DNA of 64,000 bases from Trichoplax adhaerens (GCF_000150275.1 NW_002060943.1:1416832-1480831), one strand, 5' to 3'. Counted from the first letter of the stretch, positions 2,684 to 56,446 are shown. Program-made: numbers and translations. Notes: generated by a model not told the origin, from the sequence alone.

Positions 2684-3981
2684 TAAGTTCATAATCGTTC
2701 AAACTCATTCAATATATCAAAGAGTACCTTACTAAGAAATTTCGCTTTATTTTTCTGGTAATTGAACGAAATTAACATGATACCTGCAGTATTTATAATG
2801 GCTAGATCCTTTAAAATCAACTCTGAACAATTTTAACCTATTGCGATGTACATTTGTAATATATTTCAAATTATTAGATATCCAAGGCTTAGTGTCAGAT
2901 TGTTATTTAGAATCGTTCGTATAAATTGACATAGTAGATGTTTATTACAGTTAACAAAATCTAATTTCAATGCAATGTAACTATTCAATATGTAATATAT
3001 ACTAAGCGTGTATATTTACTCTTGTAATTATATCAAATTACTTCTGCCTGCATCAATACTACTTGCAGCATGATGCTAACGCTATTATATTCACAAATAA
3101 AATAGATTTTATATCTATGAAGACTTGTATCTGGAGATAGAATTTCACTCTTACATTCTTAATGAAGTACCGTAATAGTTCAATAATACGTAACTGCTAA
3201 GTTTCATTTCTCATGATTTCACCAAGAAAACTATAAATAGGTTAGAATGCACATTTTGTATATGCCACAGAAGCGATTTCTGATGCTATTTCATTCCTTA
3301 ATTTTGCAAGTACCTTAACTTAGCTATGACGTGTGGAATATTACTACACTTATTATAAATTAAGTCTTTATTTAAAGCTTACAACTAAAATTAAGGCTTT
3401 AATATCTAAAAATAAGTTCATTAACACGATTACGGTAATATTCTCAAAGTTAACACTTGGCTAACTGAATATAGTAATGTCAAATAAGTCGTAAAGTGTT
3501 AGCTTCTTTTCTGATATACTAATAGATCAAAGCTGATCTTGTATACGGCACTTGATTTATTAGAGATTCGTAGCTTGTGGAAAAACCGACTATAAGTGCA
3601 CAAGGCTTGATTAATTAAATTTAATACCCCTTTGTATACCTTTGAGAAATCTGCTCTACAAAGACGATTATTATGAACAAAGTAGAAGGCTAGAAATAAA
3701 ATAAAATTTTTCGTCCACTTTAATTGCTCGTATTCTACTTGAATTAACACAAAGTATTCGATCAATACATATAATATACAATCATTTTATTTTTACATCA
3801 TAATCATGAAATCTGTATATCTCATAATATCTATAATGTTTCTGGCCTAGAATAATATCATCAAGCATCCCCCCAAAATATTATACAACTATATCAACCT
3901 ATTCATTATTTGTTAACAAAATACTTTGGTAGTATTTTTCAGTAATTTACATACGAGTATTTAGCAATGGAATTATTTAAT

Positions 3982-26987: not shown

Positions 26988-29900
26988 TTAGAAATCAGGT
27001 AGATCGCAATAGTGTGCACCTGCACAAAAGGAATAAGGACAAATTGATACACAGGCTGCATGGCTACTGCAGGGAGTATTCAGGAGTGTGTTACCATCAC
27101 AGGATTCCCTTTTCTGTTCGTAAATAAATTACAAATTGAAAAGAGAAAAATTAATATTTTGCCGTAGATTACAAATATATTATTAATATGCTTGTATCTA
27201 AAAATAAACATGTCATGTACAAGTCGATTTTACCTCCTATCATCATTATTAACAAGTCATAGATAAAAATAGTTATATTTGAATAGATTTATTGTATTTG
27301 ATTATAGGAACTTCCTTTATTTGATTTAAGCTAAACTTTCGTTATGACGTAAATTTCCTATATCATATAACATGGATCATATCAATGACCTTTATACTGT
27401 ACCCATAGCATCATCCTAATACCCTATAGTAGAGTAAACTATCCGTAAGAACAGCGATTTTAGTTGTGGAGACAAATGTATGTTCAAAAATAGTAAAACC
27501 ATTAAAAAGTAACGTCGATTGAGTATGATATAGAATTTCATTAGCTACTAGTTATTAAATTTTACAGTCATTAATCATCTATGAGCGGTTTACATAAATA
27601 GACCAAGTAATATTGGATCAGTATCCGTAATGATATAAAATTTTAGTCATACCCAGTAGCTTGCAATAATGGCTTTGGATATATTTAGAAATTGTGAGGT
27701 TGTTGTAATAGTCTAAGTTAGACGCTATTTCCAGTATAGATAATAGCATAGCGTAACAAATACTTTATAGAAAAGTATACTGTAATAATAACAGCGATAG
27801 TACTAGTTTGAAATAATAATTATATCATAGCTACATGTCGATTTTTGTAGGCACTGATATTTAATTTCTACATTAGTGTACGTGGTAGTATCAGAATTAG
27901 ATTATGTATGCACGATGTCATTAAATATACGAATTCATTAGCGCTTCTTGCTATTGATTAAATATTAATGTTTAAATTGTACACCGCGATAGTATCAAAT
28001 TGACTTTAATGAAAATACTGTAACTATATTTAAGTATAAATTGATAGCCAAAATACAGTAATATGATCTTATTTCCGCCAAAAATTCCTTAATTAATAGC
28101 TTTAAGGATTGAATCGTTTATTGTGACTAATAATAAGATTCATTTATACCAGGAAATGAAATTTTTTTGCAAATAATGCATTAGTGAGTATTTTAGACAC
28201 ATAATTTCCGCTTGTCAAGGGAATGACAACTTATGATAAAACTTCTTAATACTGCATGGTATGTTGTTGCTATCACTATAGTTCAGGACTAGTTTTAGAA
28301 AAATGATTAGTTCAGTACACCAGACTGTAGGAAATGTCTATTATTACAATAATTAAAAAGAATAGATAATGGTACTGCGTAATGAGTTATCTAACGCTAG
28401 TCACTATTTAAATGTTATATCTTACGCGCTTTTAATTTCAAATGGATCAACATACGTGCACATTTTATGATTGGCAATTAATTATTTCTATTCATAGCGA
28501 AGGGTGGTATTGTAATAACAAATTTAAATCAAGAGTAATTATAAGACACCATGTTGGACTTGATCCCTTACAACTAAATTATCAATTGAAGAATGCTAAT
28601 TGATTTTCCATCTGCTATTTTTTTATAAGTCCAATTCGATCATCTCCTAATCAGTGCTAAATTATTCGGAATACTAATTGGTATCCCACTTAAGCTATAT
28701 ATAATTCTATCTGACTGAAAAGTCGGCTGTAGCTTATCAACTCATTAATGAAAGCTAATTAAAATCTCAACTATAACATGTATCATATCTGCCTTAAAAT
28801 AAACTATACGAGTATCACAGAAGATAGGTATAATATTGAGCAAGTACAGGTATCACGCAAGATATTACTTTAATAATAACAAGCTACTAGCTTTTTTTAA
28901 GATAATGTTATTCCTACGATAACGAATATTACTATGCTCTGATAGTCTACTTCTTAAAATCATGATTTACAATGTATAGCAAAATTTTATATTTAATCAA
29001 AACCAGACATACTAGGCATATGATTAGCATCTACTAGTTCAGTAAGCTCAATAGAGTACTGGAGCAAAATAAAGCAATGCTACGAGCACAGAACATTGCT
29101 ATCAAAATACTATACAGTACTAGTACTCTATGTTTATCCTTATTCTGAATAAAATACAACACGAAAGATATTTATAGACTGCTGTGTGGTTATGATAGCT
29201 TTGTATTTCCCCACCAAATATATTATTAAATGTAAAATATTGACCAAAATTTAGTAAGAATAGAATAATGATATTTACTCCGGAAGATTGCATACAGAAT
29301 CAAATTATTCTGTTATTGCCATGTTATCAACTTTATACTGCTATGCTATGCTATAAAATCTTAGAAGACCGCATTGCATCAATATTAATTAGATAGGCTT
29401 TAGGTTCTACAAAGAATATATAGGGTCTTTTATAACAAATAATCAATAAACACGGCTGAAGAGAATTGGCGTAGAAAATAATTAATAAATAATAGTATAA
29501 GTATCAACTAGTCGATACAACTGAAATAATAGCTCTGAAAAAATAGGAGAAAAGCTGGTCAAAGTTAATAAAGTACACTGAAAGTCCTCAAGCTAATCTT
29601 GTACATCTAATGATTGAAATTGAAGGAATTATCTCGACATGCTTGGATAAAATAATAAAATATCTATTTACTCAAGTTGGTAATACATCACTGTGATTAG
29701 ATAGGCATACTAAAATAACCGGATACATAATGCAAAAACATTAAATTTTGAATGGCAATAGAAAATAAACCGTAAATCAATAACTTTTTTTATTTTGAGC
29801 GACAACTGAACGAGTAATAAGTTGATCATATTTATAATATGATAGACTACCATTTTAAACGCTGAATTAATTTCCCTATCTTATAATATTAATCTATATA

Positions 29901-30125
29901 GCTTTTAGCTGTGATCGTTTGAGGTTTTATTTTGAATATGGTGTAGTCTAATAATTCTCAGTTCATAATTTAAGTTATTTCTGTTTAACATACCAGAATT
30001 TCTTCGATTAAACTTCTGACGTAAAATCTCCTTAAATCTTTCATGGTACCTCCGTTGGCTTGATCGGCCATCATGACAAAGCATACCGCAACCAATAAGA
30101 TCAATGTAGCCGTTGAAGTTTTCAT
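26988..30125 (-). CDS. Secreted 6-Cys knottin-like prepropeptide, paralog A (exons 30125-29994 and 27113-26988): MKTSTATLILLVAVCFVMMADQANG-GTMKDLRRFYVRSLIEEIL|KR-ESCDGNTLLNTPCSSHAACVSICPYSFCAGAHYCDLPDF*
   Basis: Hand translation. Donor CTG|gtatgt, acceptor gaacag|AAA, phase-0 intron of 2880 bp. Signal peptide, KR site and Cys framework are shared with paralogs B and C. Confidence 0.85.
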
Positions 30126-33100
30126 GTTGAATTTTTTTGTAGTAAAGTCTATATGAACATTATTTCTTTTATTAATTAAAATTTTCGTTTAAAAATAAGA
30201 CAGCAGTAGGCATAATTGCCAAAATATACATAAGTCATAATAAAAAAAATGAGGGTAAGGACTCAATAGCCATAGCTATGTGAATAATTAGTCAATCTAT
30301 TAGACAATCACTGCAACGTCCAATGATTAAAATTTATTTTCCTTCAATCTTAATCATCACGACCTTCAACTATATCATTGATCAAGATATTAATGCTCCT
30401 CTTTTATTATTTTGAAAACAAAAAATTAATGACATTGAACATAGACATAAACTATTTTCTTTCACGCGAAAATAAAAAGATAAGCAGCACTTTGCCAAGG
30501 AAATTAATTTGGTCCCAATGTAATTGTCGACTGTCTGATGTATTATAAGTAGAGTATGTTCGTAATGCTATCATAAACATTAAGATATCATTTAATTATC
30601 AGCAACAGAAAGGGAAATCTCTAAATTAAACACCTCTCTCCCGCTCTCTCTCTTGTTGCCTTTCTTGCATTATTGAAACTACGGTATATTAATAATGAAA
30701 TGCAGACATAAAGAGAAGTAACAAAGACAGCAGGATCACATTTGTATTCTAGTCATTAATGGTAAATTAAAGCTAACTTGGCTGTTGTATCTGCTAATTT
30801 AGATCTTAATTAAAAGAGAAAAAAGAATAAAAGAGATCCAATTAGACTATTCAACGACTTTGAATCAGATATCAGCTTCTTTTACAAAGAAAAAGGAATA
30901 AAGACTATTTTTCTATTGGAACTGTCGCTATATATTAAAAAATGAACATTGTGTAGTTAGCAATGTAATCGCACAATATTTACTTTTCATGTCCAGATTT
31001 TTTAATTGAACAATAAATGATTAGATAAATAGGGAAAAGAAATAGAAACGATATTATAGATTGGTTTGAGTCAATAACTGTATCAACGAGCACAAGGTTA
31101 TTAGCGAGAGATGAAATTGAAATACTTCACAAGATTATAGTAATAAAAATATTTATATAAGTAAATACTATATCAAGGATACCATCGTGGAATTGGATTT
31201 ATTAGAAAACTGCTTGTCTAGTTCATTAGTAACATTACTTGGCTGATGTTGTAGTACTGTTTTTAAATCATTGGAATAACATTACTAAGTTAAATGTCGT
31301 ACAACAAGATCATAAAATTTGAATTAGTAAATAAATAATTGATAGCTAATATTTAAATTTTTGGATCAAACGGTCCTGCTAGATCTTAATTCGCATGTAC
31401 CATATATTCCATAGCTGTTGGTAAATGCTGCCGCCGATTTTTTTAAAGTCAATTTTAAATTAATAAGAACAAAAATCAATAGTACATTCTAGATAAGAAA
31501 AATGTGGATATGTTCTCAAGTTATTTTCTTAGATGACGCACTTAATAATCTCAGAATAATGGACAATCTATTTTTCTTTTGAACTTTTAACATGGGATAA
31601 TATTGTTTCTGGCTTTAATGTCCTTTTGTCTTTTCGATTTAGCTATGTAGGTATAATTACGGAAAGGCTTGAGAGAGTACGGTACAAGTAAGAAATTTGA
31701 TTTAATTGATCAGAGGATACAATCTACTGATATGTTCTGAGTCAATGATTACAAATATAGTAGGAATTATTTTGAATACGTCTAAGATATCATCAAATTA
31801 TTATCAAAGGCTATTAGGATTATTATAATTAATATCAACTAATGTTGTTTTTCTTTATAACTAATTCTTTTTAGTAGCAATAAGAATAACAAAATCGATA
31901 TTGAAACCATTTCTGTAATAGTGACGGTTAAACTTGACATATCATAGATCAAAATGGCAATAACCCTTAATAGAAAAGACTTTAAGATTGTAGTAATGAT
32001 TCCTTTGACTTCATAAATATTGCAAAATTTCTATCAAGCTTTCTACAAACTCTATGCAATCTCGACTTCAGTTTCATCTTAGATCATTTAAGTCATATAT
32101 TTCTGAATTATAAGACAATATAGCAGCTTTTAAGATCATAGGCCTATAAAATAGTGGCAAGTTTATAGTAGAAATGATAAACTCTATTTAATGCTACCAC
32201 GTTGTCTTTTACTATTTCTAGTATCCAAATCTTATTATATAAAAGCGTAAAATTTCATTTTATATGCACAATAATTATCCATTTGACGTGATCTATCGCA
32301 TCTTAAGTACATGTACTTTTAAGATCCTCTGTGATATCATTTTTAAAAATAATTTGATTAACTACTATATTAAAATAACTTATCTATCATGGTATATAGA
32401 AGAATTTCGTATCCTGATAATGTAAGTAATCAGTTCAATCTATCATCAGAATAATTTTAACATAGCTAAGAAGAAAATCATTTAACATGGATAATTTTTA
32501 CCTTATTTAAGATAGATAAGCTGGTAAAATTGAAGGGTAGCTGCTGCTAATTTGCAAGTCGGCAAATATTAATGAGCGAAATAGGCAGACGATGGGTAAT
32601 TTATAACATTTTGGCCGCTATTACTTCTACTATCTGTGCATATCAATAGTGATAGCAACAAAGGGGTAGGATATAGACAAACAATAAGTCCATAGAATTT
32701 TAAAGCCGTTGACTATTGAATAATCGGATTGTATTTCATTTTTATCATCATCATTCCTGCCCATATCCATATAATTTGATCGTTTTACACTCACATAAAT
32801 CAATCAAGACCTACGCACTAATATGGGCATACTCACACATGGAACAGGATAGAATTGATGATTCTGCCCGCCTACTCCTTCCTAGCTATTATGGTAAATG
32901 TTATTAATTTATTTTACATTCATTACCATATCATCATGGCGATAAATTTAACTAGGTAGTTTTTTTTATTCCTAGTAGTTAATAGAACTCTAATGCCTAA
33001 CGTGTCAATAGGTTTTGTCTAAGCAGATGGTCTACATCATCATTTACTGACACTCATTTGACCTTATTTTTATAAATTATCAAATCTATTATGCTACGCA

Positions 33101-36100
33101 ATAGTTTCTGATCGGTCATGATAGTCCATTCAAAAAACTAAAAATAACAAAATTTTACCAATATTAGTCAAGTGGTCAAGCATTTAAAGTTGTAAAAGCA
33201 CAGAATAGAAATTAGGAAAGGAAATCCAATAGGAGATTCTTAACGAACGGAAAAGGCTTATTAATAACTCTGTCAGTATTAATTTCCAGGAAGAGGGGGT
33301 TGTTGATTTCCATGATGCCACACGATATTATCGTGGAATAAAAATAACAAACAACAACAGAATTAATATCATTGAACAATTGTTCTTAATCAATAGGCAA
33401 ATGAATCAATGCCTATGATTGAGGATAATGGTTACTAAAATGGCAACTGTTAATTGCCTTTAATTTAAATGAAATATCAGTTGTCTGATTCCATTATCCA
33501 AGATATCAATAAAATGATTCTAACCTTGCATATAGTATCATTGCTATTGTCTATATTAACACCTTATTGTTCTATTCAATTTGCAAGATAAAATAGATCG
33601 TTTAGCTCTGACTTCTATGATCCAATTTCCTCCCCCTTCTACCTTAACAATATTTCCTTCATTTTGCCTCTATTTTTTATTCAAAAGCGTTAAAGTGATA
33701 TTGCAATAATTAATGTTTATATTAATCAGACAAGTTAAACGTGGGCATTTCTCTTGACATGGATATCTATAGATATAAATCTATACTAGTTATACCAAAG
33801 ATTACAAGAATACCTTTTATAGTGAATATTTTAATATTTTGTCATATTTTGAGTCAATTTTATTCCAATCAATCGTAAAAATAAATTATAGTAATATAAG
33901 ATAGGCCAACAATAATATCAATCAGAATATACATAATATTTATCACTATTATCATATACAAGTAATGAAAATTTTATCTCTCTTCTTAGGGCAATTTTGA
34001 TTATGAAATAGATACTCTGGCGATTGCTCGTGGCCTAAAACATTGAACTCGATTATCACAAGTTTCTAATTATATCATTCTGATGGCGCCAATAAGAGTA
34101 CGAATAAAACAATTGTTCCAACAGTCGCTGCAATATGTAATCAATTCAGCAAATGAAAATTCCTTCTTTAGTTTATTATTCTCCTATTAAGATAGTTTAG
34201 AAAGAATTCAATGAATTAATCAAAGCGACTAACAACGATATTGATAAGCCATAATCAAAAATAAAATTAGCTTTATCTTTAATCAACCGACAACAAATAA
34301 AAGAATAAAATTGCAGAAAAAAAATTTGTTTAAAGGATTGCCGATATTTGAATACACTAAGTCTGCAATACTAAAAGTTGAAATTACTACATGAACCATA
34401 ATCAACTACATTAAAATGAATATAAAGAATAAATACAGAAAATGAACAGTAAAGGTTATGATGACAGAAATTTATCAATAAATTGAGAGCAAATAAATTA
34501 ATAATACTATAAATATTGTCTTGTTTTATACATTATACATGATAATTATGAATTACGTCTGGAAGTAATTAAAATAAAACCTTTACTGTAAGTTTTAGTG
34601 ACAAATAGGCGAATAGGAAATTACTCCTACTTAACTTACTATTACTGTAAGTTAAATAATGCCTTGTAGAAAAATAGATTTTTAATTGATTGCAATATTA
34701 CTGTTATCATTATAGAACTTAATTAAAGTTTAACTTACATTATAGCAATTGTGTATAATAGATGTATTTATAGCCAAGAATAGTAGAATATCAATTAAGT
34801 ATCCTCCTAGCCTAGTTAATTTTAGTAATTTTTCTCTCTGATAATATACATGTAGATATTGTTGAATTAATATCTTCAACGTGATTAATTACGGTAGATA
34901 ACGATAATCATCCTGTAGTAGTAAGTATGCACTATAAAGCATTGATCATATGTTCTCTTTGTTCCCTCAAGAAAATGAGAGAGTTAATTTAGTAATAAAA
35001 GTAGATTTTAAATTGGATTAACATCAGTGACTATAATTAATGCAGGTAATGCTTCCTCTTTCTTTTCGATTAGATAACTTATCTTAATCAGTCGTACTGT
35101 ATATAGTTATTTATTTCTTTGTTCACAGTATCTTATTTAATCGACGGTTAAATGATAAAGTCTATTCTTTTTATTTTGAGAACACCTTGATTAAAATAGC
35201 AGTAATGTTTAGTGATGTTATTTTTATCCTAGTAGAAACAAAAATGAGTTGAAATATTGCCCTTGATAAAAGAATTAAATTTTTATGATCGTTGTATCAT
35301 ATCTGTTCACAAATACGACATCATTACATGCTACACTTCTGTAGTTTGTGATTAGCAGTTTTAAATCAGTAATGCCCTTTAAATTAATTATCTAATATCT
35401 AATTCTATTTGTTATCGTATCGATTTAACTCGATATTTGTACCTATGCGGTATGCAGAGGATAATCTACTCTACTAATTATAAATATTTCGCGTTCATAT
35501 AGTAGATATCTAAGATTTAGATATTCTTTATTTAACATAAGTAAATTATAATTTAGTGTCCATTTTGTAAATCATAAGACTGGAATAAGACTTCAAAATT
35601 TTAAATTTAATTTTTAAATTTAATTAAATAAAGCTATTTATAGTGATATCCAAAAGTATAACGCAATTGTCAAGTTTGATAATAAAAATTAGCATTCAAA
35701 CTACTTAAAAATATTATAATTCAGTGTCTGATTAATTAATTAGCAAATTAACTAATCACATATTACAGTTTCCTTTAATAGATTTTAAACTAATGAAAGA
35801 ATCAAATATTGAACAAAACTTGGACGATACTGAACTTTGAATCTACATCAGTTATAGCTAATTCAATGCACAATACAAATTTTTTCTCCTCTTAAGAAAG
35901 GGTAATGATAAATTTTTATTCTAGAAATGACAATGAAGATTATATATAACATCATTTTAAGCGTGACATAGTATGTAACTTCAAATTTTACTATTTACAC
36001 ATTTATCTGATCTGTCTACAGCTGAAGTTAAATCAAATCTAAGCATTGATTCAATTTTATTCATGATATGTGCCATTATGACAATGGTGATTAATTAAGT

Positions 36101-39100
36101 CTGCACCGGTGCATCTGCTTACGATATTAAACTGTAAAAGATGAGGCCTTTGAAATTTTAAATTAACATCAAATGCCAGTATATTCCCTATATATTCAAT
36201 TTGAATTTATCTTGCCAAATTTATAAATACCACATTAACATACAGCTTGGAAGAAATATAGATCTGTATTTACCTTTATCCTTTATTAGTAATACATCGT
36301 TGTATTATGTTTTAACCCTTAATTTAACCTTAGCAATTTTACTTGATAGACATGGAGATGGATATAATATATATATGTATATATATACATATATATCTTG
36401 AAAATTTAAAAGAATTTGAGTTAAAAATGACTCATTTATCTACGTGATATAATCATTAAAGTGATATATCGGTCAAACGTATGAAAACACCTTTGCTTGT
36501 TAGCCAATTACTCATTAAATATTCCATCTATAGCTTCACTACGGATAATAATTAATTCTATGATATATAATAAATAACCTACAAGGTCGTGTCATCCGTG
36601 CGATAATATCGTAATACTAGGAAAAGTTCTATGATACTATTTGCAATCAGATTCTATTTCGTACATTACTGACAACCAATCTTGGTATTAATAATAATTA
36701 AGTAGATTTAAAAGTTGATAGCGGTAAGAAAACTATTGGTAGATAAACAGCATTAAATGATAACAAGATAAAATTTAATTATAAGCTTGTTTACAATTTG
36801 TAGTTAAAAATTTGTCATGTAGAATAGCCTTTATAGAAGTCGTTGAATTTATTTTTTGCTTCCAAGTTCAATGATGATTATAATAAATTCTATAAAGACA
36901 GCCATCATTTTTATTGTAGTTCCGCCTACTGTTGGAAAGATTATGATATTATTCTGCCCTCTAAAGTTCTAGAAAATTCCATTTAACACATGTAACATTT
37001 ACTGTAATAGTAAATTAAATTTCTTACCATGGATCATGAAGTAATAACAATAGTTCTTGACTGCTTATGAAAAGTTAAAAATTTGCCATTTTAGAACATG
37101 AATTAAATGATCTATCACTATTCTATTACAACTTAGAGAAAAAAGTAAAAGTATTGAGGTTATTGAGTTGAATTGATGATGGAAACAAAAAAATTAAGAA
37201 ATGCATTTTATTAGAACTAAATTCTATCCATTGTAGAGTTATGAATCACCATAGGAGGTAGGTTTTAGAGGAAAGATATTGGCGAACTATAAATTAGCTT
37301 AATCATAATAGCTATTGATAGCTTATAAAATATATTATAGTCTAGTTGCAATATCAAAATTAAGTGATATTCCTCAGATAGTTATTATAACTAGCTCTGA
37401 TCAAATTGAAATACGATCAGTATTCCCAAGAAGGATTTCTTAAAGAAAGTCAAAGATTGCGTTGTTTTTTTTAAATATGGAGGAAAAACAAGAATCAATG
37501 GAGTTAGAATCAGTTAGAACAAAGACATATTTTTGAGAATATCATTTATATTGCATAAATTGTCTAAAATACAACAACCTTCATCTTAACTGACATGCTA
37601 TTAAATCTTGCATATCCCTTCTGCTTAATTGAAATCAATTCATCAAATTATCTCGATTTGGAAAATAAATCATCGCAAACACTGACAGTCTATCCAATTG
37701 CTAATATAAATATGACATCAATGGAATGATTGCTTATAAAGATAGTTTTTATTTTATTATTAATGTGTCAAAGTTTGTAGACATTTATTATGTAGAATTT
37801 TGAAGTTCCGATAAATAAAGCAACATTTCCAACGGTGTAATTTGAAACATATGCCTATTATGTTAGAGTCCCCAAAGATTAAAGTGAGCTGTTTAAATGC
37901 AAAATGATCTACAATTAGAATGGATTACAAGCAATAAAACAATTTTTGAGTAACAAGTACCGATTGTTATGATTGTAATATGCTCAATATAGGTTTAAAC
38001 TAGTAGATAAAAGGTATTTTATAATTAAAAAATCTAAAATGTTATACATATAGTTATAGTTTCATGTGTGGAATACATTACTAAATACATATCATTCAGA
38101 GATTTAAATATAAATGTATTTTAAATTCGGTAGATGGATGTTATACTATATAACTCGTATAATATGAGATGAGATTATCCCTTTAGATGCCAATAGTGAT
38201 AGAAGAGAGAATAAAAGTTTTGTATAACGGTATTTCCAGAATTTTATATGGTCATGGGCTTAATTAAACGCGCCATCGCGTGCAATGCTATAACTATGGC
38301 AGTTTCTAATAGCCAAGTTACTCATGCTGACATTCTGTATCATTTAGCTGACGTATTTTTATTCTATTTTCTTAATTTCATCTTAATAGTGTGCTAAGAA
38401 CTCACCAACGTATTTATCAGTTTTTACCTTTATTACCATGATAGTTCGTACCTATCAGCTACTAACTATTTGATGACTCAATCAAGCATTTCATTATTGA
38501 CTATATTCGGTATTGCTGCCTATAATAACGATGGAAATGATTCTTTCAACGCTTGAATAAGATCTTATTTTTCAAGTCGTAAACCATTTATTGTATTGCA
38601 ATGAAGTAAACTATCAAATAGCCTTTGATTATTAAAGGATTTGCTAATCGTGAATACCACTGGTGGACTTGTATTCTTCTTTATGCGATTTCAATTGTAC
38701 TGCATAGGAAGTGAATGATTCCGTCAAAACATATATCTTGACGTCCCGTTACAAAGCAATAGACAAATTCGAAAATTTGAATTGAAACGCTTATGACTAA
38801 TCTAAGATACATAGGCAATTTTTTCTTTGCAATTTAATATCTATTTTAGTAATAATGCGAGAGCTTCGTAATTTACACGCTCCAATACTGCCTATGTGCC
38901 GTAAAATAAAATATATATTCTTTTAATATTATTTCGGATAATCATTCAATCGCTGTTATAAAACACTTCAAATAGTGCAGTGTTGTTAAAAGCTCATCGT
39001 ATAATGCCAATTGGATACGAGGTACTATTAATATAGCTGTCTACTACTTTAATGAGATAACTATTGGATTATTATAGGAAAATCATGACTCCGTGACAGA

Positions 39101-44442: not shown

Positions 44443-47295
44443 TTACCACGAAATGATATCGCAAAAGCCAACGGCGGCTTCGCAGTACGATACAACGCAA
44501 TGAGCTAAGCAATCATTATCAACACTGCAAGCTTGGTTACGTAGATAACTTTGATCGCATTGACCATATCTCTATAATTTTCAAAAAAAGTAAATAATAT
44601 GGTCAAATTAGTAACAACGCTTATACTGGAATAACTTCTATTTGCCTTTTTAAATGACTATAAAATGATCGAAATAAATGGTAAGTTTTATGCTGGATTT
44701 CTATCTGTCATTTTATTAATTAAATAAATGATCATAACATAATCAAACTAATAACAATGTTGATGGTGCAATGACTTCTATCTGCCATTTTGAATGATCA
44801 TAAAGTAGCCAAACCAGTATCAACGTTTATGTTAAAATGACTTTTATCAGCCAAATTAAATGGCCATAAAATAGTCAAATCAGTTATAATATTTAGGCCG
44901 AAAAGACTTGTATGTGCCTTTTTGTTCATAATAAAACCGATTGAATCAAAACTATATCAACTTTGAAATTAAATTAGTTTGTATCATATGGATAAAACTC
45001 TATTTATTCATTAATTCATACGTATCCTTAACGATGAATTGCTACAGTAGAGAAGCTATTTACAGACAGAATTCTATAACACTAATAAAGGGTTACAGTA
45101 TGAGATATATTAGCGACTTTATTATTGATATTGAAGATATTTAAAATAGAAAAACTCGATCTGAAATCGACGACATTATTTGCATAAAAGTAGGTATCAA
45201 TGAACCTATCAATTAATAATCACGATAGCTATTCAATAACTATCTTCAATTTACAAATGGAGTAATTAGATAATATTAAACTAATTTCAGCAAAAAAACT
45301 TTGCCTGCATTAAAGGTAATAGAGAATGATATCGTTTTCAGGTCCTCAATGGAGTTTATAAAGGCATATAATGTAGGCATAAGCCGTATTGACTTCGTTC
45401 ATGAAAGAATGCAAAAAAGAAAATACTAAATTCTTGTCGATTTCCTACTACTATATCACCAACAATATGGTCAGCATATAAGTCTACTTCACTGTCATCG
45501 CATATCCATTATTTTAAAATCAGTTTATTTTTTAGCTGTTATGGTAAGCTTATTTGTGGCCTAAGAGAAAGTATGCAACCGCCAGAACTATGTTGACGGA
45601 AGTCATTTTAAGGATCAAAATAAGCTACCGTTAAAGGTTTACTTCTTTGATTTACTGCTCTATAAGGCGATCTTATACGCAGTTCTTGATTCAAAAGGAG
45701 CTCTATATTAAGTTCAGTCAGTGAAAGTTCAAGTATCGGTAAAAAAGAGTACTAATTAAACTGAAAATTTCAATCTTATTAAATGGGTGAGATTAGGAGG
45801 AGAAATGGTCATCCAATATATAAAATCGAAAGTATTTACAGTAAATTATCTACATTATCCATCGCTAATAGCACTAATTATATTACTGTGCTGTTTGTTA
45901 TAACCATTGATTCAATAAACTTGTTAGCGAAAGAAGACATTTGGTTTTACAGGAGCGACCTAGAAATTTAATTGCATTCCATTCTAAGTAAAAGTGGAGC
46001 TCTAAGAGCTCTAGAGCTACTATTATTGAACACTACAGGAACAAAGAACAACGAGCATTTAATTTACCTCAATCAATTCCTTTTAATAATATATTAGGAA
46101 TGATAGACTGTTGTTGGTTTAAATAGCGATTGATAGTTAACAGAAAAGAAAAGACTATGATATCCTGCGGCTTGATTTTTTCAAAGTGTACAGTATTCTC
46201 AACATGGCTGTTATCGCCACTTCACAATTCCATCAGTAATCTACAGAACGATATTCTAGTGTTGACCATTAAATCAATATCATGTATCCCATTCTAACAG
46301 ATCCCATCTTGCATTTCTTGCCATAGCAGCAAATTGCAAGAAAATTGCTGGCTATAATGTCACTGTTATCAACGATTGAGCATTTCTAGTCCACTCAATA
46401 CATTTTATTAGACCAATTAGACTCTCATTAATTGATACCTAGAAACTAAGTTATGTTCAATTAAATCGCCATTTTAATACTAAATTCTCTTTGTCTCCAA
46501 TTCATATCAGGGCTCTTTCTAGCAGACTAATTGCCTTTATCGCTTGTGTTGTTTAAGGTATAAATTGCGTAAAAAGCAAGTCAGAAATTGTGACTATATA
46601 TCGTCGATGATATCAGAATGAAAAATTAGAATAGCTGCTCAGATTACCGACATTGCTTCAGATGTCAAGATTGAATTGTAGAGTAGTAGTAATAGAGAAA
46701 CTACTGCTTTACAATTCAATCGTAAAATAAAACTATCCTGCTGTCAGTCCTTCGACTTCCTATTATCCTGTCGTGCAGTAATTGATCTCCCAAAATTCTT
46801 CCTCATGATCAACAAGACTGAATTCAAATACTAACAGTTTTGTACTTAAAACTACTACACTGAATGTCTAACAATATACTTAAATGATCTTGTACACGAG
46901 CTAAAAGATCCGAGGCTTAATAAATCTAGCATATTTATAGCTCGCACATTTCATTATTGTCGATTTTGGATCAAAAGTAATCAGATCTACTGTATCACGT
47001 TAGAGCTCAAATTGAAGAGTAGGACACTCATTTATCCAGAAGAGAATGAGTTATAAATAGAGTATAAAAAGGGCAGTGGTGTATCATAAGGACAGTGCAT
47101 TGAATATACTTATTAGCCATAGGCTAAAATTGTAATAGAGAAGATGATCTAATTAATTTAAAAACATTATCCGCTTACACGTTGTTTTTCCAAGTAAAGC
47201 CTTGCCAAAGCATTATATCCATTGGCTTGGCTGTTAAGAATGACCAAGCAGAAAGCTAATGCGAAAAGTAATTGAAAGGTGACTGATGGCTTCAT
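44443..47295 (-). CDS. Secreted 6-Cys knottin-like prepropeptide, paralog B (exons 47295-47179 and 44571-44443): MKPSVTFQLLFALAFCLVILNSQANG-YNALARLYLEKQR|R-YGQCDQSYLRNQACSVDNDCLAHCVVSYCEAAVGFCDIISW*
   Basis: Donor CGT|gtaagc, acceptor ttatag|AGA, phase-0 intron of 2607 bp. The RR site is created across the splice junction. QANG is shared with paralog A; exon 2 is 21/42 aa identical to paralog C. Confidence 0.88.
44630..44940. repeat. Degenerate 66-bp-period minisatellite in the paralog B intron
   Basis: The motif gactt(c/t/g)tat(c/g)(t/a)gcc recurs at 44773, 44839 and 44905, with more diverged copies near 44633 and 44698. Confidence 0.65.
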
Positions 47296-47569
47296 AATTT
47301 CTCTTTACTTTTTCGAAGTAATTCTTCTAAGTAGCACTAAATGTAAGGAAATGAATTAAAATTGAGCTAGCATAATCTCATAACAGAGTTGAAATACCTT
47401 TGTATCAGCGTCTAAATAGGTAATAGCTATCGCTTAGTATGCTAACTCAGTCAAGCACTGATTGAAAATAATAATATATAAATTATCACAACTATCTATT
47501 TAAAGAAGTAGAGAAAGCTTCTATAGAGTGAAATAGGTCATTTGAAGATCAAACTGTGAACTAATCTAC

Positions 47570-48180
47570 CCTTTCTCCTATCTTTAACTGAGAAAATTAC
47601 TTTCAATTTCATAAAATAATATTCTACTTTGCTTTGTTAAGAAACAAGTACTCAATTAATTGGCAGCCAATGCTGTATAATACTCCTACTTATAAAATTA
47701 ATTTTTCCTTCTTCTTCTATCTTGAACTGGAAAAATTACTTTCAATTTCACAAAGCATCATTCTATTTTGCATGGTAGAGCACCAAATACTGAATTTACT
47801 GGCACTAATGCTGTATGAATCCAATAATACTAATCTTTCATTTCTTCTATTTTGAAGGAAGAAAAATACTTTCGATTTCAAAAATAGCACTAATTTTGGC
47901 TTAGTAAAGGATCAAATGCTCAATATACTCGAACTGTGTAAAGTACATTTCATTTCATAAACAGTGTTCAATTTTACTTCGTACAGGAACAAACACTTAA
48001 TTTGCTAGCAGCCAATATGGGGCTAATACTGGCAACCAATACTATACTGTACAATTCTGGAGTTATAATTCTAACCTTTGCTTACCCTATCTTTAACGGA
48101 GAAAAATACTTTCAATTTCTTAAAATAGCACTAAATTTTGCTTCGCAAAAGGATCGAGTGCTCAATTAGTTGGCAATAAA
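47570..48180. repeat. Degenerate tandem repeat of about 130 bp (4-5 copies) upstream of the paralog B coding exon
   Basis: The block gaaaa(t/a)tactttc(a/g)atttc, with similar flanks, recurs at about 47592, 47731, 47863 and 48101. Confidence 0.7.
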
Positions 48181-49244
48181 TACCGTATCAGACTTATAAA
48201 ATGGACTCATGATCGCATTGCATTCGTTCCATCTTTTTACTATTCTTAAGGCATTGCAGTATTTTTTCTCCGAGAAGAAAGAGTTGGAAAGAAAAGTAAT
48301 TCACTGATTTGTAAACATAGTGCATTGAAAGTAGTAAAGTATACAAGCCTAGTTGGTAAAAGTACATGATAGTGATATCTTAAATTCTTGTTATTCTATT
48401 AGAAAAATAAACAGAAACTGTTCTATGGAAAAAATGTCCGATCAGAATAAATTGCAAAGCAGGAAGTAATAGCATCGTAGTTATTGGCTATGGAAAGATA
48501 GAAAACTTCAATTTCACTTCATTGGATGAGAATATGACTCAAAATTTAATAATGTTCGATAGAAACTATTCTTCTACTAACCGGGAACAAGATGGCTCAA
48601 GTGTGGCAAGATCAACGATGCGGAGTGGAATGCTTGAAATCGGCTCTTTACTCGGCTATTTATCTATTTCAGCATGGTAAATACATTAAATTTTTTACTC
48701 TGAACTCTCAATTGAGCCAGCCCTCATCCTTCTATTTTAGTCCTTATTATGCTACTGCTCTATGTCTATTTTTAGTCATATTTTAAGGGGGCTGGTACGG
48801 GTCGATAAATGATTTTATGCCTTATATATAGAGATACACAGTAGATATATTTAACATTTTGCTCGGCTTTACTAAGCCATTACTGAATTTAATTAGTATA
48901 CTGTATTATTTACATGAGCCATTTTCCAATATTAGTCAACAGGAATAAATTACTAATTACAGACTGGTATTGTTGTAAAGTAAAATTAATAGGAATATAT
49001 AATGAACAATAGCATTGAAATTAATTTGACTATTTTATGAGAATCCATTTTTGCCTTAATTCTTAATTGATCGATCCTGTGATCAACAATACAACTTCAC
49101 TTTATGAAATAGCAATATTAATGAAGCGACAAATTGAATTAGAATCGTTTTGCAATTGTAAAGAAACAGCTGCTTGAAGCCAGTCTAATTTTCTCTTATT
49201 CCACATCATTTATACGTAGCAATTGGAGAAACTGACTAGATAGA

Positions 49245-49685
49245 ATGACGGAAAGGAACAACATTAATTCAGGTAGTATTGATAGACAACCGTGATTCGA
49301 GTCGACATTTTTCAATTAAAGGGATAGGATAGCAATCAAATCGTTTAACATCGTCGATAATGATCGATGGATGTTTGTGCATGTGGTAATATTTCTATCA
49401 CTTTCCATCGAGTGTATTCTAATTGGTCTCATTGCTGTCTTGTTAATATCACTCAATATCATCACAGTTATTATTTACTTGAATAAATCTCATCATGACA
49501 AAGGTAAGATCGATTATTACACCACATAAACACATTGTAATTTTTAATTTTAATTGTGATCCTATTTCAAAATAGGCAATGAAACAGTTACAATTTTAGA
49601 CAATTGAAAATTCAGTGATAAAACTATTATTAATTAATATAGGCCGAAGCGAGTTTAACCAGACATGGAATTACCTTCCTACTAG
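49245..49685 (+). pseudogene. Possible decayed 5' end of a type II membrane protein gene
   Basis: Frame from ATG 49245 has two stops, then a long hydrophobic segment (CILIGLIAVLLISLNIITVIIYL) ending at a strong donor AAAG|gtaaga (49503). The next apparent exon (49576-49685) has in-frame stops and RPKR. Confidence 0.3.
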
Positions 49686-52600
49686 GTAATTCTACTACAC
49701 TTTGATCTGGAGATTGTTGTCTTTGTATCTCTGTCGTAAAACTCAAAATCACTTTAGTCCTATCGATTTTGCTATTTGAACCGTTTTAGTTAATCTGTAT
49801 TTTAATGAATTGTTATAAATTGAATTATTAGCTTGTTATATTTCAATCGATCGTGAAACTCACTATAACTCTAGTCCTATCGAGTTTGCTATTTTAAACC
49901 ATTTTTTATGATTATCTTGATAAATTGTTCTAAATTGCATTAGATAAATAACAATAAATGTGAAGAGGTTTCAGATTCATAAGTCATAGTTAATGATTCC
50001 ATAATAAATAAAAAAGCATAAAATATTAATTAAATTAATAAAGAAAAAGCGTGAAAAGGATTCTAATCAAAGCAAAATAATGCAAGTTGATGTGATAATC
50101 AGTTGACGAAGCTATTATATTTAGACGGACGAGAGATATTTTAGTAAAGTTTGTTGAGATGGTAAAAATAGTTTGTTGTAATGGAAAAAGAATTTAAATA
50201 TATCATTCTGATTGGAACCAAGTACTTCCTCCCTCTAATGCACACTTCCAGATTGTAGAATAATATTCTATCTATATTAAGATCTCCAGTAATTGAATCC
50301 TACAAAGAGGAGTAGCACTATTGATTGATACTATGCAGTATTTATACGGTAAATAGCCAAAGAGCTAAAAATATGTTTTAGCCAAAGACAGAGACGGCAT
50401 TTTCGTTGCTATCCACGTGAGAATCTGCGTGAGAGGATAAACATCTTTTCTTTTGGTTTTATTACTTCCCTCACAGATGAGTCATTATCTGGAGGTGGAC
50501 CAGTTATCCGATTGTCTCTTAACACAATTTCCATCGCTTTGATTATCCATTTTCTATTAACAATATGAATTTATCGATTTAAAGCGAATCACTTTCGTGT
50601 CAATATCAAGCGCTAGTATCCATTACTTTATAATACCTGAGTTTGCCAAACGTATAAAAATAATTCATGTTCGATTAAAGTGAATTATTCTGGCTGTTTA
50701 ATAAAAAGAGCAAAATAGAAAATTTAGCAGTTTGAGCCTATCATACTCAAACTTAATGAAATTATTCTTCTTCATCTCTAACTTCCTTCTACATGTTCAT
50801 GTCTGGTTTTAAAGCGGATAATTTACACTGTCAACTTTGAACCTGCCGTATTGAATACGTGATGCATGATTCTTATATCAAAGCAGGCTATATCCTGGCC
50901 AATCAGCGCTCAAATTCCTAAGCTAAAATTTCATTTTTATATCCATAGAGTCGTTAACAGAGTCTTTAATTGTAAAAGAGCTATTTAATTAGAAAAGATT
51001 GAGTTGTTCTTAAATTTATAGCCAATATAGATTTCTCTGTTAAGCGATCAATACATAACGCATTTATATCCAATTCGTTCTCAGTATTGTTATTTTATTC
51101 CTGTCTAAAGGAAATATTTTTGTATAAAATGAGAAATTCTCTGCATTTAAAGATAATCGCCATTTCAGACCATTATCCTATTTCTTTACCACAGGATATC
51201 CTCTTTATAATATTACATAATTGAACCCTTACGCTCTTGTTTTATGAAATTAAAAAGCTACACATAATCAGCGTCTTATTTCACATTGTCTGCAAAGTAA
51301 TTCTAATAAAAATCTCGTTATTAAAATCTTTCCTAGTCTTGATGACTACTGAATCATGATTGAAAATACCATCCTTGATATGGTTGTCCTTTGGATTTGC
51401 ACTATTCTGCCAAATTTGTATTTATTTGTAACAATTTGGCCAAAGATGGAGTCAATATCGGATTTAATCTGTAACTTGAATAGCGATACTCCTTTTTTAG
51501 ACATGAAATCTCCAGAGAACCTGCTGTATGCATTGCTATCTGTATTTAAACGAAAGAACTGATTGCTAATAATAGTATTCTATATACACCATAAACATAG
51601 CTAGGAAAATGCAGTCTTTTTAGTGAGCTTAGAAAAGGACCAAAAAATACGTCCTATCGTCATAAAACTAATTTCCTTTTGTCTAGAAATGACAAACCGA
51701 TTACCCCATTATTCAATTTAAAATTGCGAACCTAAATTTCGATGTCATACATTACCAATAGGATCAATAAATATCAGATAAAAAAACTAGCTGATTCTTC
51801 GATAAGAGTATCAAAAGACTGCGAATTATTTTGGTTACCATTATTCGAGAAAAGAATTCTTACTGTGTATCCATGAACAATATTTGAAATTAAACGGAGG
51901 CATGATTTTTCTCCGACTTTTTATTAATAATAATTCTATTTGCCCTAAAATAATCTTTTACTACTTTTTAATAACTATTTAAACTATACTAATTGATCCA
52001 ACCTTAAAAAATTCAATTGGAAATTCTAACATTAAACGTAACCTATATTATAATTGTGAGCATAGAAGTAATAGTTTCAGCTAATTACATTGGTCAAGGG
52101 TATTAAAAGTTTTATTAAAACAGTAACTTAAAGTAGTGTATGGCATAGATTAGTTAGTCTATTATGCTTAAAAAGTGATTGTAGATAGTTTTTGAAATTT
52201 CTGTCATTTTTAATAACTCAAAGTTCGAGTTACTGGACAGTGAACCTAAAGAGTTCTCAACCCATTCACTACAGCAAGCCATTGCGGTAGGCCATAAATG
52301 AAGATCCAAAAATATCGTTGATGCAAACTCTGCACCTATGTAGTTTGCAGAAAGAAGTTAAGACTGCCTACGGGTCTAGATGGATTCACATATCTAGGTA
52401 TTTAATAAAGTAAATAATTTTTATGTGATAACAGTTTCAGAAGGGTATATCGTATGCAATAAAAACGGCTCCTTTTAGTGATTAAAATCTCATGACGTGC
52501 GCGAGTAAATTACAAATAAGGAAAAATTGATATATTATATTACCATTTAACTTTGCCACAGAGGCTATTCTACATTCTCCTTAAAATTTTACCATCACGG

Positions 52601-54305
52601 ATGCAATAAAGAATCTATTTTTATCGATATTGTCTTGTGTTAATCTCACTGATAGCTGATAAGTCTTCATAGATTAATTAAACCCTCTATCTTTCTAAAA
52701 TTGGATTCTTAAAGTCGTATTTAACGAATAAATTCTCGGATACTAGCCATTAGATCTATAAACATGTATGATCTTGAGATATGAAAATCTGTCGTGTGCT
52801 ATTCGCTCAGATACAAGCTTCCAAGTACAAGTTTTGATCTTAAATTTTTCTAGTTATATCAGAGCACTTTAGAATATTACTACAGCAACAATTAATGACT
52901 AAATAGCACTCTTTTGATCTGAACTCACCTTCATTTCTGTTATTTATCGTCTACAGTATAAAAGGTTACCAGGGAATAATATAAATTAATAATAATAGAC
53001 TGATGAGCTAACCATCGACCTTACTCAAACTTAAATTTCAATGTCATCTCTTTTTAATAATTGTTATATTACATATTTTGATGTTGTACTGTCTGTAACT
53101 ATGTTAAAGACCGCTACTAAGTATAAATATTTGTATTGATCGTTATACAATTGTTAGTTTATCGCTAGATTTATTGATTGTAAAACTAATTCATTTTCCA
53201 ATAAGGGCGATTGAATTAGTTTGATACCTAATTATGAGACAGCTCCAAGATCAATCATATTCGGATCATGACCATTTCGTCTTTATACGCGAACTCTAAC
53301 GTTTTTTAAATAGAACGTAAAGAGATCAAAATTTAGGTCTCAGAATAGACGACAGCAATATCGTTTATTAGTATTAATTTCCATGTATTTATATTCTGTA
53401 GCTGATTGAGAACATAGATAGAAGGTACATAAGTGAGTTGCTATTTTTTAACGAAGAGAATTGGTTATTTTATTTTTCGCGTAAAGAGAAGGTCATGTTA
53501 TTTATGCCCTGAGACTCGAAGAAAAGTTTCATACTTATCACGGAGAATTAGCTTTGATAGGTACTGTAGTTTGAGATAGAAGATCCAGAAAATATCTCTT
53601 ATAGATCTTTGTCACAAGAATATGATACAAATTAATGACATGCACTATGATCTAAATTAACACTTCATTGAATCAACACGATTGAATCTCTCCAGTCATA
53701 GCATCCATATTGCTATGTTAACATGTATTCCAATGCTAATAGCACATATTGAACTATTTATTAGTAATTTTAATTATATTATTAATTAATTAATTAATTA
53801 CATGTATTATCCTATCTTTCGTTAATGTCAAGAAAGAGCGAACAAACAATTTTTTTTGATTTTGCAGATCGGAAATTTATTTCATTGGATCGTTAGGAAT
53901 AACATAAATCTGATAACATCATCATTAGCAAGGGAACTGCTACAAATTACCGTATAGAATTTTCGCTAACCTAACAGTTCAGTAATAAAACCTAGCGGTG
54001 TAAATTTGTCAGGATTAAATATGTTAATAGTTTGTAGTTTGTACTATAGAATGATCACATTTCTATGTCACAGATAAGACCATCTTGCATCTCTATGTCG
54101 CTTATTTTGATCAATAAATTTAATAGGCAAAACATCATAGCTTACGCTATGTACAAAGCTATATTAATTTTAATTTAGTAGTTAATAATATATTTTCTGT
54201 TTATGAAGGCAATTTTGATGATTGATATTTATCTAAATCTAATAATGATGCTTCAAATTCAAGCTTCGTTTATATTTAACTTTGCTGATGCAAACGAAAT
54301 TTCAG

Positions 54306-56446
54306 TTACCATGATATGGTGGTGCAGTAGTTGTGAGATGTAATACAGTAGGACACGAAACATTTCAGAAGGCACTGAAGATGGTTAGTACAGTGTTGAG
54401 TTTGAAGCCAACTTTGATCACACTGGCCACTCCTCTATAAGTAGTTCAAATAGGTAATATAACATCGATCAGTGTTATATCCGACAGCTATTATCACATA
54501 AACATTTTTCTCTAGTTATCCGTGCATCATATCATGTTAGGTTTAATATAAAATACATATAGCAACTTTCAAATTGGGGGGTGGTGTCTATATGCGCTTA
54601 ATACTCCGCTTTCTATAGCTAATTTTGATCAATTGTCGCTATCGATAGATTTAATGCCATAAACGCCTATATCGCAAGCTTTTGTCAGTGCAGTTTTGTT
54701 AAATGATCCTGAAGTAGCATCTAGCTTTAATCTATTCCAATGGCATCCCTGCACGTAGTTCTTTAATAACTTGTTTTAAGCAATGCTTAGGTCGTAATCC
54801 TTTTTAAAATGGTAAATTATTGCTTGGTGAAGTTTGTTGTATTTTAAAACTAGCTTTAACTTTCTGTTCAGTTTTCAGCCAATGCATGTATGCATAAGCT
54901 ATATATTACGCTAACTTTTAACAATATATCTGCCTTGCTCATCTAGTGAGGAATAGAAATATGAAACCTATCCAGTAGCTAAAAAAGCAAGCAATCCTTA
55001 CTACAGCTTTAATACCGCTAGATTGACGGTACTTATTAACACATCTAACCAAATGACATCTATCATTACCATACACTCATCTAATATTTTCAGCTGCTGC
55101 AGTCTCGCAATTATTGTAATCTTTCAATATTTATTAGACAGGATTTAAATTAAAAAAAATATCAACTGTATTTACTAGCCTAGTTTCATTTAAAATTTTT
55201 AACTTTTAAATCTAATCGAGAAAATTTAAATTTGAAATTACAGCTGGTAAAGTTGGTAACAATGTACCTCAAAGGATAATATAACTTTACTTTCAGGTAG
55301 GCTTTTCCATCGATTAAGTTATATCATCATAGCTTATATAACAGACTATCCTTTTTTAATAAATTTCTAAGATATTATTAATGTTGAATGTCATGGAAGA
55401 AATACGAAGATTTTAGGCCAGATATTGTACCAATACTCAATTAAACTGTACGTATATTGCTATTTTAGTACCTTTCTGTCCTAAAGTCGATTTACACTTT
55501 ATTAATTTTTAATAGCTGAACCCTTACTACTCTGTACTACTATTGCAGTGTGCTAAATGCTGCTAATTTTGCATCGATAAAGTTAAGATTACAAATATCT
55601 GTAGTGTTTCGGGTTTCAATCAAAATAATGTTACATAACTGATCAGGAAGAATTTTATAGCAGGCATATAATTACTTAATTAATTGCTGTTTAATTAAAA
55701 TTTTTCAATTTTCACAACTGAAGAAATATTTGAATATCAAAGGATAAATATCATACATCAGTTCGAATTGTTAGCGACTAACCATTATTGTTTTGAATAC
55801 TTTATACTCTCTAGTGTTAACTTTCACTTTGCTGAAGTATGGTGCAATTTTTATTAATTAAAAGTTAATTAAATTGGCTCCAAGATGTCACTAACGAAAA
55901 CTATACCGCTGATTATAGTCTTTGAGATTGAATGTAAATCATCGTAATTGGACTGTTTTCGTAAATTGATCCAATATTATACCTTATCACCTCTACTGAT
56001 TATCTTTTTATAATTATCAATACTATTCTAGAACTCTGAGGTATAACCCTAACAAGATATTCAGTACTTCACAGAGTATCATTAGTGTAATCCTTATTCT
56101 GTTAAAACTTCTTTTAGAAGAAGCTAGATCCCTTTAAACGTGCATAATACCTACTTTCTATCCAGCTATCAGATGAATGGGTAAAAATGTGCACATTCAA
56201 TCTAATACTGATTAAAGAAAGTGAATTATACTGCTATAGCTCTGTATTACTTCTAGTATCGCTATACTGTTAATATCTTTTAACAGATATAGAAGTATAT
56301 TTAAATTCACGATTAAATCTTAAACTCACAACTTGCATATCCACGTATCGCTTCCATGGGTTACTTCTTACAACGTCGGCATGAGTAGTGAAAACAAACA
56401 TGCACATAGCAATAGCCAAGGCCAGAAAAATGGTTGCGTTCTTCAT
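54306..56446 (-). CDS. Secreted 6-Cys knottin-like prepropeptide, paralog C (exons 56446-56330 and 54434-54306): MKNATIFLALAIAMCMFVFTTHA-DVVRSNPWKRYVDMQV|R-SGQCDQSWLQTQHCTNHLQCLLKCFVSYCITSHNYCTTISW*
   Basis: Donor GTT|gtgagt, acceptor ttatag|AGG, phase-0 intron of 1895 bp. Exon sizes (117 and 129 nt) are identical to paralog B. Confidence 0.88.

Follow-up and report, generated by a model that had tools for sequence, protein, structure and literature searches.

A placozoan family of secreted six-cysteine peptide precursors with a predicted knottin fold in Trichoplax adhaerens

A 64,000-nt stretch of the Trichoplax adhaerens genome (GCF_000150275.1, NW_002060943.1:1416832-1480831; hereafter the window) was found to carry three genes, designated A, B, and C, each of which encodes a secreted precursor with a six-cysteine mature peptide, and a fourth member, gene D, lies beyond the window on the same contig. 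The family is real and expressed, as seen from the RNA of gene C, and parts of it are in public data, where their kinship has gone unnoticed. By sequence the family is new, but its structural and precursor kind is known, and its members, at least four in T. adhaerens, are probably placozoan-specific, prohormone-like knottin precursors acting as paracrine signals. The genome searched was a 105.6-Mb assembly of 1414 contigs, in which the window is G000:C1414:1416832-1480831. The exons of the three genes, numbered from the first letter of the window, are as follows.

Gene A exon 1: 29994-30125, minus strand; signal peptide with QANG at its end, followed by a pro-region of 19 aa.
Gene A terminal exon 2a: 28993-29058, minus strand; 21 cysteine-free aa and a stop codon, used by the Trichoplax sp. 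H2 model.
Gene A six-cysteine exon: 26988-27113, minus strand; KR, a 39-aa peptide and a stop codon, a candidate alternative last exon.
Gene B exon 1: 47179-47295, minus strand; signal peptide with QANG at its end, followed by a pro-region of 13 aa whose last residue is basic.
Gene B exon 2: 44443-44571, minus strand; a basic residue, a 41-aa six-cysteine peptide and a stop codon.
Gene C non-coding 5′ exon, ~75 nt: 58421-58495, minus strand; seen in one contig of one run, with a firm 3′ end and an estimated start.
Gene C exon 1: 56330-56478, minus strand; a 32-nt part of the 5′ untranslated region (UTR), the ATG at 56446, signal peptide and pro-region.
Gene C exon 2, coding part: 54306-54434, minus strand; a basic residue, a 41-aa six-cysteine peptide and a stop codon.

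The initial annotation of this DNA had proposed three co-oriented minus-strand genes with phase-0 introns and had given six coding exons for them. The translations of all six agreed in full, and GT donors, AG acceptors, and phase 0 were verified at all junctions. In each gene, exon 1 runs from an ATG start through a hydrophobic signal-like segment into a short pro-region; signal peptides were judged by inspection, from a hydrophobic core and small residues at -3/-1. The claimed cysteine spacing, C-x9-C-x5-C-x3-C-x4-C-x5/6-C-x5-stop, was likewise present in all three aligned exons, together with the residues said to be conserved, that is, the six cysteines, an Asp after Cys1, a Leu in loop 1, S-[YF]-C at Cys5, and five residues past Cys6. 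A loose regular expression for the cysteine pattern followed by a stop codon matched 3 times in the window vs. 3 times in 300 Markov-shuffled windows (0.01 per window), a 300-fold difference.

Expression of gene C was evaluated with Logan contigs of four runs from four studies, aligned to 54000-56800. The joint 54434/56330 was found in contigs of three of the runs (X6, X10, and X7), which skipped 1895 nt, and the plus-strand CT..AC ends of this joint mean GT..AG for the gene; one 241-nt contig spanned it with 90 and 150 nt on either side. Sequencing depth was 87-307 in the exons, with thousands in the 3′ UTR in X10, vs. 3-6 in the intron. The contigs covered 54000-54434, and the 3′ UTR extends below 54000. 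The junction 56330/54434, which had been predicted from the DNA, was thus carried as an exact joint by RNA contigs from three studies. At the other end, the contigs stopped at 56479-56483, where an acceptor AG lies at 56480-56479, and the unaligned end of one X6 contig (depth 139) mapped to 58426-58455, with a donor GT at 58420; in this one contig the 5′ exon is spliced across a 1942-nt intron to 56478. A TATATAAG (TATA) box is located near 58527, ~30 nt upstream of the estimated start of the exon. The contig end, donor, acceptor, and TATATAAG box together indicate that gene C has a non-coding first exon, unseen in the initial annotation. No counterpart of this exon was found near A or B, and the upstream regions of A, B, and C gave no mutual alignment. 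Sequences resembling acceptors also directly precede the start codons of A, B, and D, so that these genes may have 5′ exons as well.

Contigs of other strains differed from the reference gene C by conservative changes at 54344, 56371, and 56394, namely, an Ile to Val in loop 5, and a Val to Ile and a Val to Ala in exon 1. The contigs of one run were ~3% divergent from the reference over the first 840 nt of the C intron. Compared with this intron divergence, the coding changes hint at constraint, the numbers being small.

For gene B, an annotated ortholog was identified. Among 1.84 billion representative proteins searched with a profile built from the three cysteine exons, the only true match was an 81-aa hypothetical protein of Trichoplax sp. 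H2, TrispH2_011556 (RDD36642.1, hereafter P0002). Exon 1 of gene B is identical to residues 1-39 of P0002 at 38/39 positions and exon 2 to residues 40-81 at 42/42 positions, giving 80/81 overall, with the predicted junction exact; the proposed junction 47179/44571 is that of this annotated gene. Two long, high-scoring profile matches, P0001 and P0003, were rejected as low-complexity repeats that match many unrelated Pfam families. Homologous-protein searches with P0002 and with an alignment of the four members A-D found nothing further. Only P0002 and the database protein that matches gene A, P0004, were used as whole precursors; for genes A, C, and D, searches and folding took single exons. 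Two tandem repeats accompany gene B, one of 139 nt in 2.4 copies at 47559-47884, just upstream of exon 1, and one of 66 nt in 2.4 copies at 44725-44884, within the intron.

Gene A has two candidate last exons. Exon 1 is identical at 44/44 residues to the start of P0004, the 65-aa Trichoplax sp. H2 protein TrispH2_011557, which is encoded on the same 44.7-kb Trichoplax sp. H2 contig as P0002, and residues 45-65 of P0004 map to exon 2a with 20/21 identity. As exon 1 continues into exon 2a in the Trichoplax sp. H2 model, the cysteine exon of A can at most be an alternative last exon. It might even be disused (27113-26988), so that the gene would end in exon 2a and yield a 65-aa cysteine-free precursor; of the two acceptors, that of exon 2a also has the better pyrimidine tract, its intron is shorter (935 vs. 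2880 nt), and the RNA-like runs, which hold ~0.12 of the sampled words in 26900-30200, are compatible with either isoform. Against a disused exon stands its preservation: it keeps an open frame, the KR, the six cysteines, S-F-C, the five-residue aromatic tail, and an in-phase AG acceptor at only 29-32% identity to its paralogs, it is predicted to fold like B, and the stretch separating the two candidate last exons contains no other credible signal exon. The exon is 37% identical to exon 2 of B (local tblastn, E = 3e-4), and exon 1 of A is 46% identical to exon 1 of B over 26 aa, both signal peptides ending in QANG; the homology of the first exons implies that exon 1 was spliced to the knottin exon in the ancestral gene. 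Neuropeptide genes commonly use alternative last exons (PMC4888303). On balance, production of the knottin isoform of gene A appears quite probable, and its loss is the possible but lesser alternative.

Gene D was predicted outside the window as a fourth, more divergent member, its status as a paralog coming from sequence comparison.

Gene D: G000:C1414:1557017-1558179, plus strand; 76 kb beyond the window, with exons at 2418-2507 and 3464-3580 of the searched segment L006.

It comprises a 30-aa signal exon with a GTATGT donor, a 956-nt phase-0 intron, and a second exon that encodes RR and a 36-aa peptide of the form C-x7-C-x5-C-x3-C-x4-C-x4-C-x5-stop, in which S-F-C is kept. The initial annotation had described a family of three; A, B, and C hold, and the family has at least four members. 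No more members were found in 194 kb downstream of the window, and tblastn of each cysteine exon against the genome gave only the mutual matches of B and C. Two weak extra tblastn matches (L003 and L005) and local ones in L020 and L022 were non-coding or noise. Because BLAST-level searches miss copies as divergent as these, the number four is a minimum. The protein collections searched contained no counterpart of genes C and D. None of A-D has a model in the current T. adhaerens gene set; in the Trichoplax sp. H2 set, C and D are missing and A may be wrongly modelled. Consequently, single-cell atlases built on such annotations cannot report on most of A-D. The family had been called hidden, which applies to T. 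adhaerens and to C and D; it is not wholly hidden, because the ortholog of B is correctly annotated in Trichoplax sp. H2, where exon 1 of A is annotated as well, but with a different last exon.

The four paralogs together follow C-x7/9-C-x5-C-x3-C-x4-C-x4/5/6-C and are 29-50% identical, with the six cysteines, the Ser, and the aromatic positions retained and the inter-cysteine loops highly variable. The pro-regions, of ~6 to 19 residues, are their least conserved part. Basic sites (KR, RR, R, and RR) directly precede the cysteine domain, and in 4/4 members five residues follow the last cysteine, with D, S, S, P as the penultimate and F, W, W, L as the final residues. The mature peptides are acidic or neutral, and thus non-cationic, with net charges of -4, -4, 0, and -4. 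The six cysteines and the loop lengths are compatible with a knottin domain of ~30-45 residues, loop 1 being close to the upper limit of what is usual.

No Pfam family scored above threshold with the cysteine exons or P0002. The nearest were Squash (PF00299) on exon 2 of B, at 13.4 bits vs. a cut-off of 22 bits (E = 0.084; A and C gave no match), and AtDEF-like on P0002 with its signal peptide included, at 19.7 bits vs. a 25-bit cut-off; the metallocarboxypeptidase-inhibitor family did not match at E <= 10. Sequence and profile searches of the PDB gave nothing significant, only a tomato fruit-specific peptide at E = 2.1. The view that no named family covers these peptides was therefore upheld, the profile search having returned only the Trichoplax sp. 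H2 copy of B.

AlphaFold2 models, built on only 3-4 aligned sequences, reached a predicted local distance difference test score (pLDDT) of 86.5 for B and 79.4 for A, and the two share one predicted topology, in which one short helix lies in loop 1, another surrounds the CxxxC, and a hairpin forms the C-terminal part. Nearly all Foldseek matches to the models were knottins, but every E-value was >1. In an unbiased scan of 48,161 representative PDB chains with a second aligner, independent of Foldseek, 13 chains for B and 11 for A reached Z >= 2, mostly knottins with a few plant defensins. The squash inhibitor EETI-II (1w7z) came out on top, with Z 3.3 (B) and 3.7 (A), a root-mean-square deviation (rmsd) of 1.9 Å, and 31/31 residues aligned, followed by the Lycium carboxypeptidase inhibitor (6jic, Z 3.1). 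When the Foldseek matches were re-aligned, the potato carboxypeptidase inhibitor 7eqz_I ranked first (Z 3.3, 34/35 residues), tied with many toxins and engineered knots. A cysteine-stabilised alpha-beta defensin was rejected: CxxxC is present but CxC is not, the last two cysteines are 4-6 residues apart, and the plant defensins scored below the knottins (Z 2.2-2.7). The term knottin-like, under which the peptides were first described, is thus supported at the level of predicted structure, by AlphaFold2, Foldseek, and the wide PDB scan. The knottin fold is the best-supported prediction, on evidence that is weak in absolute terms. In a knottin, the disulfides would link cysteines I-IV, II-V, and III-VI, the third bridge threading the ring. 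As the knottin matches lie within one Z unit of each other, the fold does not single out a function.

Data on the relatives of genes A and B are given by Najle et al. (2023; PMC10580291), whose genes TrispH2_011556 and TrispH2_011557 are P0002 and P0004. In Table S4 of that work, orthogroup OG_467 includes TrispH2_011556 and Hhon_g01706 of Hoilungia hongkongensis; OG_4163 includes TrispH2_011557 and Hhon_g01705, and both are without a T. adhaerens member. According to Table S5, Hhon_g01706 is unnamed, has a signal peptide ('wSP'), and has peptidergic_epsilon as its top cell type (fold change 550; 5 unique molecular identifiers per 1000). The tabulated mass-spectrometry peptides of Hhon_g01706 are a 12-mer flanked by Y and K, and its pyroglutamate (pyroGlu) 8-mer, these linear peptides being at abundance percentiles 0.77-0.95 (PMC10580291). 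Aligned by eye, the 12-mer matches the pro-region of B at 6/12 residues, and in both a Tyr stands before this segment and a basic residue after it, which indicates that in Hoilungia, as far as the tabulated peptides go, a pro-peptide is cut out just before the cysteine domain. In the same tables, the products of the gene A relatives also have signal peptides, with TrispH2_011557 peaking in peptidergic_eta (fold change 62) and Hhon_g01705 in peptidergic_other_1 (fold change 385), so that, except for TrispH2_011556, these relatives are recorded as peptidergic-specific. Peptidergic cells are described there as expressing a prohormone convertase, carboxypeptidases, and vesicle-release machinery (PMC10580291). 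In the portions of the study available to us, the genes are unnamed, and neither a cysteine-rich or knottin domain nor a paralogous family is mentioned. Literature searches on the gene and protein accessions and on placozoan knottins gave nothing beyond Najle et al. (2023), and the neighbouring Tadh_wf gene ids are absent from its supplements (PMC10580291). The numbering of Hhon_g01704-g01709 in Tables S4 and S5 suggests a run of secreted-peptide genes beside SAP130, and Hhon_g01705, g01706, and g01709 ('hypothetical WTNamide') each peak there in a different peptidergic cell type (PMC10580291).

Based on these results, we propose the following scheme. The signal peptide would route the 68-85 aa precursor into the secretory pathway, where the C-terminal 36-41 residues would form three disulfides and, as predicted, fold as a cystine knot. 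A prohormone-convertase-type cut behind the single or paired basic residue where exons 1 and 2 meet would then free a short linear pro-peptide and the knottin, both of which would be stored and released by peptidergic, neurosecretory-like cells, and the knottin would most likely be a paracrine signal that reaches other placozoan cells through a receptor or channel. The starting points of the scheme were directly observed, namely, the gene structures, the splicing and high RNA abundance of C, the annotated ortholog of B, and the release of the pro-peptide in Hoilungia. Lineage-specific, secreted, disulfide-rich peptides laid out as signal peptide, pro-region, and mature peptide, as the initial annotation had described them, are in agreement with all of this. 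The toxin, inhibitor, or antimicrobial role that it had guessed is not supported, as the relatives are expressed in peptidergic cells in the rows of Table S5 (PMC10580291) and the mature peptides are acidic or neutral. A signalling role is favoured by analogy, on the basis of where the relatives are expressed, of processing that resembles that of prohormones, and of the peptide charge.

The computed results do not separate signalling, toxin, antimicrobial, and inhibitor functions, and toxin, antimicrobial, and protease-inhibitor roles are considered less likely. Defensive or predatory effectors released externally, as toxins against predators or prey or as antimicrobials, are suggested by the layout of the precursors, which is that of spider and cone-snail inhibitor cystine knot (ICK) toxins, with the same signal peptide, short pro-region with a basic site, and C-terminal six-cysteine knot, and such toxins likewise vary their loops on a fixed scaffold and form the main Foldseek matches. 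The abundant expression of C would fit as well, and the language-model neighbours of P0002 were all conotoxin or spider ICK precursor clusters; their scores, however, were 0.80-0.85, and values <0.9 are reached by a third of shuffled proteins, while the mature C peptide alone gave no usable match. In contrast to these toxins, the placozoan family has no adjacent CC pair, typical of many of them, no venom apparatus, and no sequence homology, is acidic rather than basic, unlike membrane-active antimicrobial peptides too, and with four detected members shows no large venom-like expansion. Moreover, the sole cell-type data on the relatives, as tabulated, are peptidergic and not gland, lipophil, or epithelial. 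Related genes of sister placozoans are expressed in neuron-like cells that secrete peptides, which makes signalling peptides more likely than toxins, and external effectors appear unlikely. Protease inhibitors, of the potato metallocarboxypeptidase or the squash serine type, which would control external digestion or pro-peptide processing, are suggested by the top rank of EETI-II in the wide scan, by the potato and Lycium inhibitors among the top structural matches, and by the weak Squash match of B. Indeed, EETI-II shares the six cysteines and the central C-x5-C-x3-C with the placozoan peptides, the potato and Lycium inhibitors share a short tail after the last cysteine, and these plant inhibitors superpose on the placozoan models with Z 3.1-3.7 and rmsd 1.9-2.5 Å over 31-35 residues. 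But the tie among knottins deprives this ranking of weight, the Squash score is below its cut-off, and the carboxypeptidase-inhibitor family gave no match at E <= 10. The placozoan loops 1 and 4 are longer (7-9 vs. 6 or 3, and 4 vs. 1-2 residues), loop 1 is predicted helical, and there is neither significant sequence similarity nor a squash reactive-site motif, the P1 position, two residues after Cys I, holding Q, Q, G, and I in place of Arg, Lys, or Leu, so that no conserved basic residue is found there. The sources also differ, as the placozoan family is animal and the cell type of its relatives is peptidergic. In the potato-type version, the tail of exactly five residues found in 4/4 members would plug a carboxypeptidase with its terminal F, W, W, or L. 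Known carboxypeptidase inhibitors, however, carry a hydrophobic pair at the end of the tail, and the penultimate residues here (D, S, S, P) do not form one. The constant, aromatic-ending tail is a genuine feature of the family, but an inhibitor function of either type appears unlikely.

It is also conceivable, but very unlikely in our estimate, that the active product is the short linear N-terminal peptide and that the cysteine domain is a carrier or sorting domain or a co-released by-product. Only pro-region peptides, one of them with pyroGlu, are listed from mass spectrometry in Hoilungia, and the Trichoplax sp. H2 model of gene A omits the cysteine exon; the pro-regions, however, are the part that the paralogs conserve least, and it is the six cysteines, the Ser, and the aromatic positions that are kept. 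Paracrine knottin signalling, which we prefer, has its own difficulties. The structural similarity is weak, with Z <4, a normal level for proteins of 40 residues, and the knottin exon of gene A may be unused. The cell type in Trichoplax is inferred from orthologs and not from the T. adhaerens genes themselves, the cysteine-rich domain of Hhon_g01706 is assumed from its orthogroup and the similarity of its pro-peptide, and TrispH2_011556 is absent among the Trichoplax sp. H2 rows of Table S5 (PMC10580291). Furthermore, the mature knottin was not detected by mass spectrometry. Standard peptidomics seldom identifies intact 40-residue peptides with three disulfides, and the absence of the mature knottin is therefore uninformative.

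Endogenous signals on disulfide-rich, toxin-type scaffolds have precedents, among them vertebrate agouti/AgRP. In Nematostella, ShK-like2 is a toxin-type scaffold used as a neuropeptide (bioRxiv 10.1101/2020.05.28.121442), and alternative transcripts of the arthropod agatoxin-like peptide gene give different precursors (PMC4888303). All three release a disulfide-rich scaffold from neurons or neuroendocrine cells as an endogenous signal. Their cysteine motifs differ from that of the placozoan family (ShKT in Nematostella, eight cysteines in the agatoxin-like peptide) and no homology exists; signalling has been shown for these toxin-like neuropeptides and is proposed by analogy for the placozoan family.

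Placozoans have no neurons, and their behaviour is coordinated by ~14 peptide-secreting cell types whose known transmitters are short linear peptides. That their neuron-like peptidergic cells use cystine-knot mini-proteins as intercellular transmitters is a tentative suggestion. If true, folded disulfide-knotted peptides would be a new chemical class in early peptidergic signalling and the earliest-branching case of toxin-like neuropeptides, and animals without nerves would have used the knottin scaffold for signals between cells at the same time as, or earlier than, its use in venoms. The peptides would also be the first knottins from Placozoa found in the literature, different paralogs would mark different peptidergic cell types, and the family would offer a test case for a shared origin of toxin scaffolds and neuropeptides.

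The window has a G+C content of ~30%, and the open reading frame (ORF) scan found no ORF of >=90 aa between 24.6 kb and its end. Rhodopsin-type G-protein-coupled receptor (GPCR) genes number in the hundreds per placozoan, and the proximity of one to the peptide genes is therefore given no weight. This receptor gene and a metalloprotease gene lie in the left part of the window.

Rhodopsin-family GPCR: 12988-14136, plus strand; intronless 382-aa ORF matching 7tm_1 (E = 3.5e-24).
ADAM-type metalloprotease: 3982-8595, minus strand; ORF pieces matching the reprolysin propeptide, reprolysin catalytic, disintegrin, and ADAM cysteine-rich domains.

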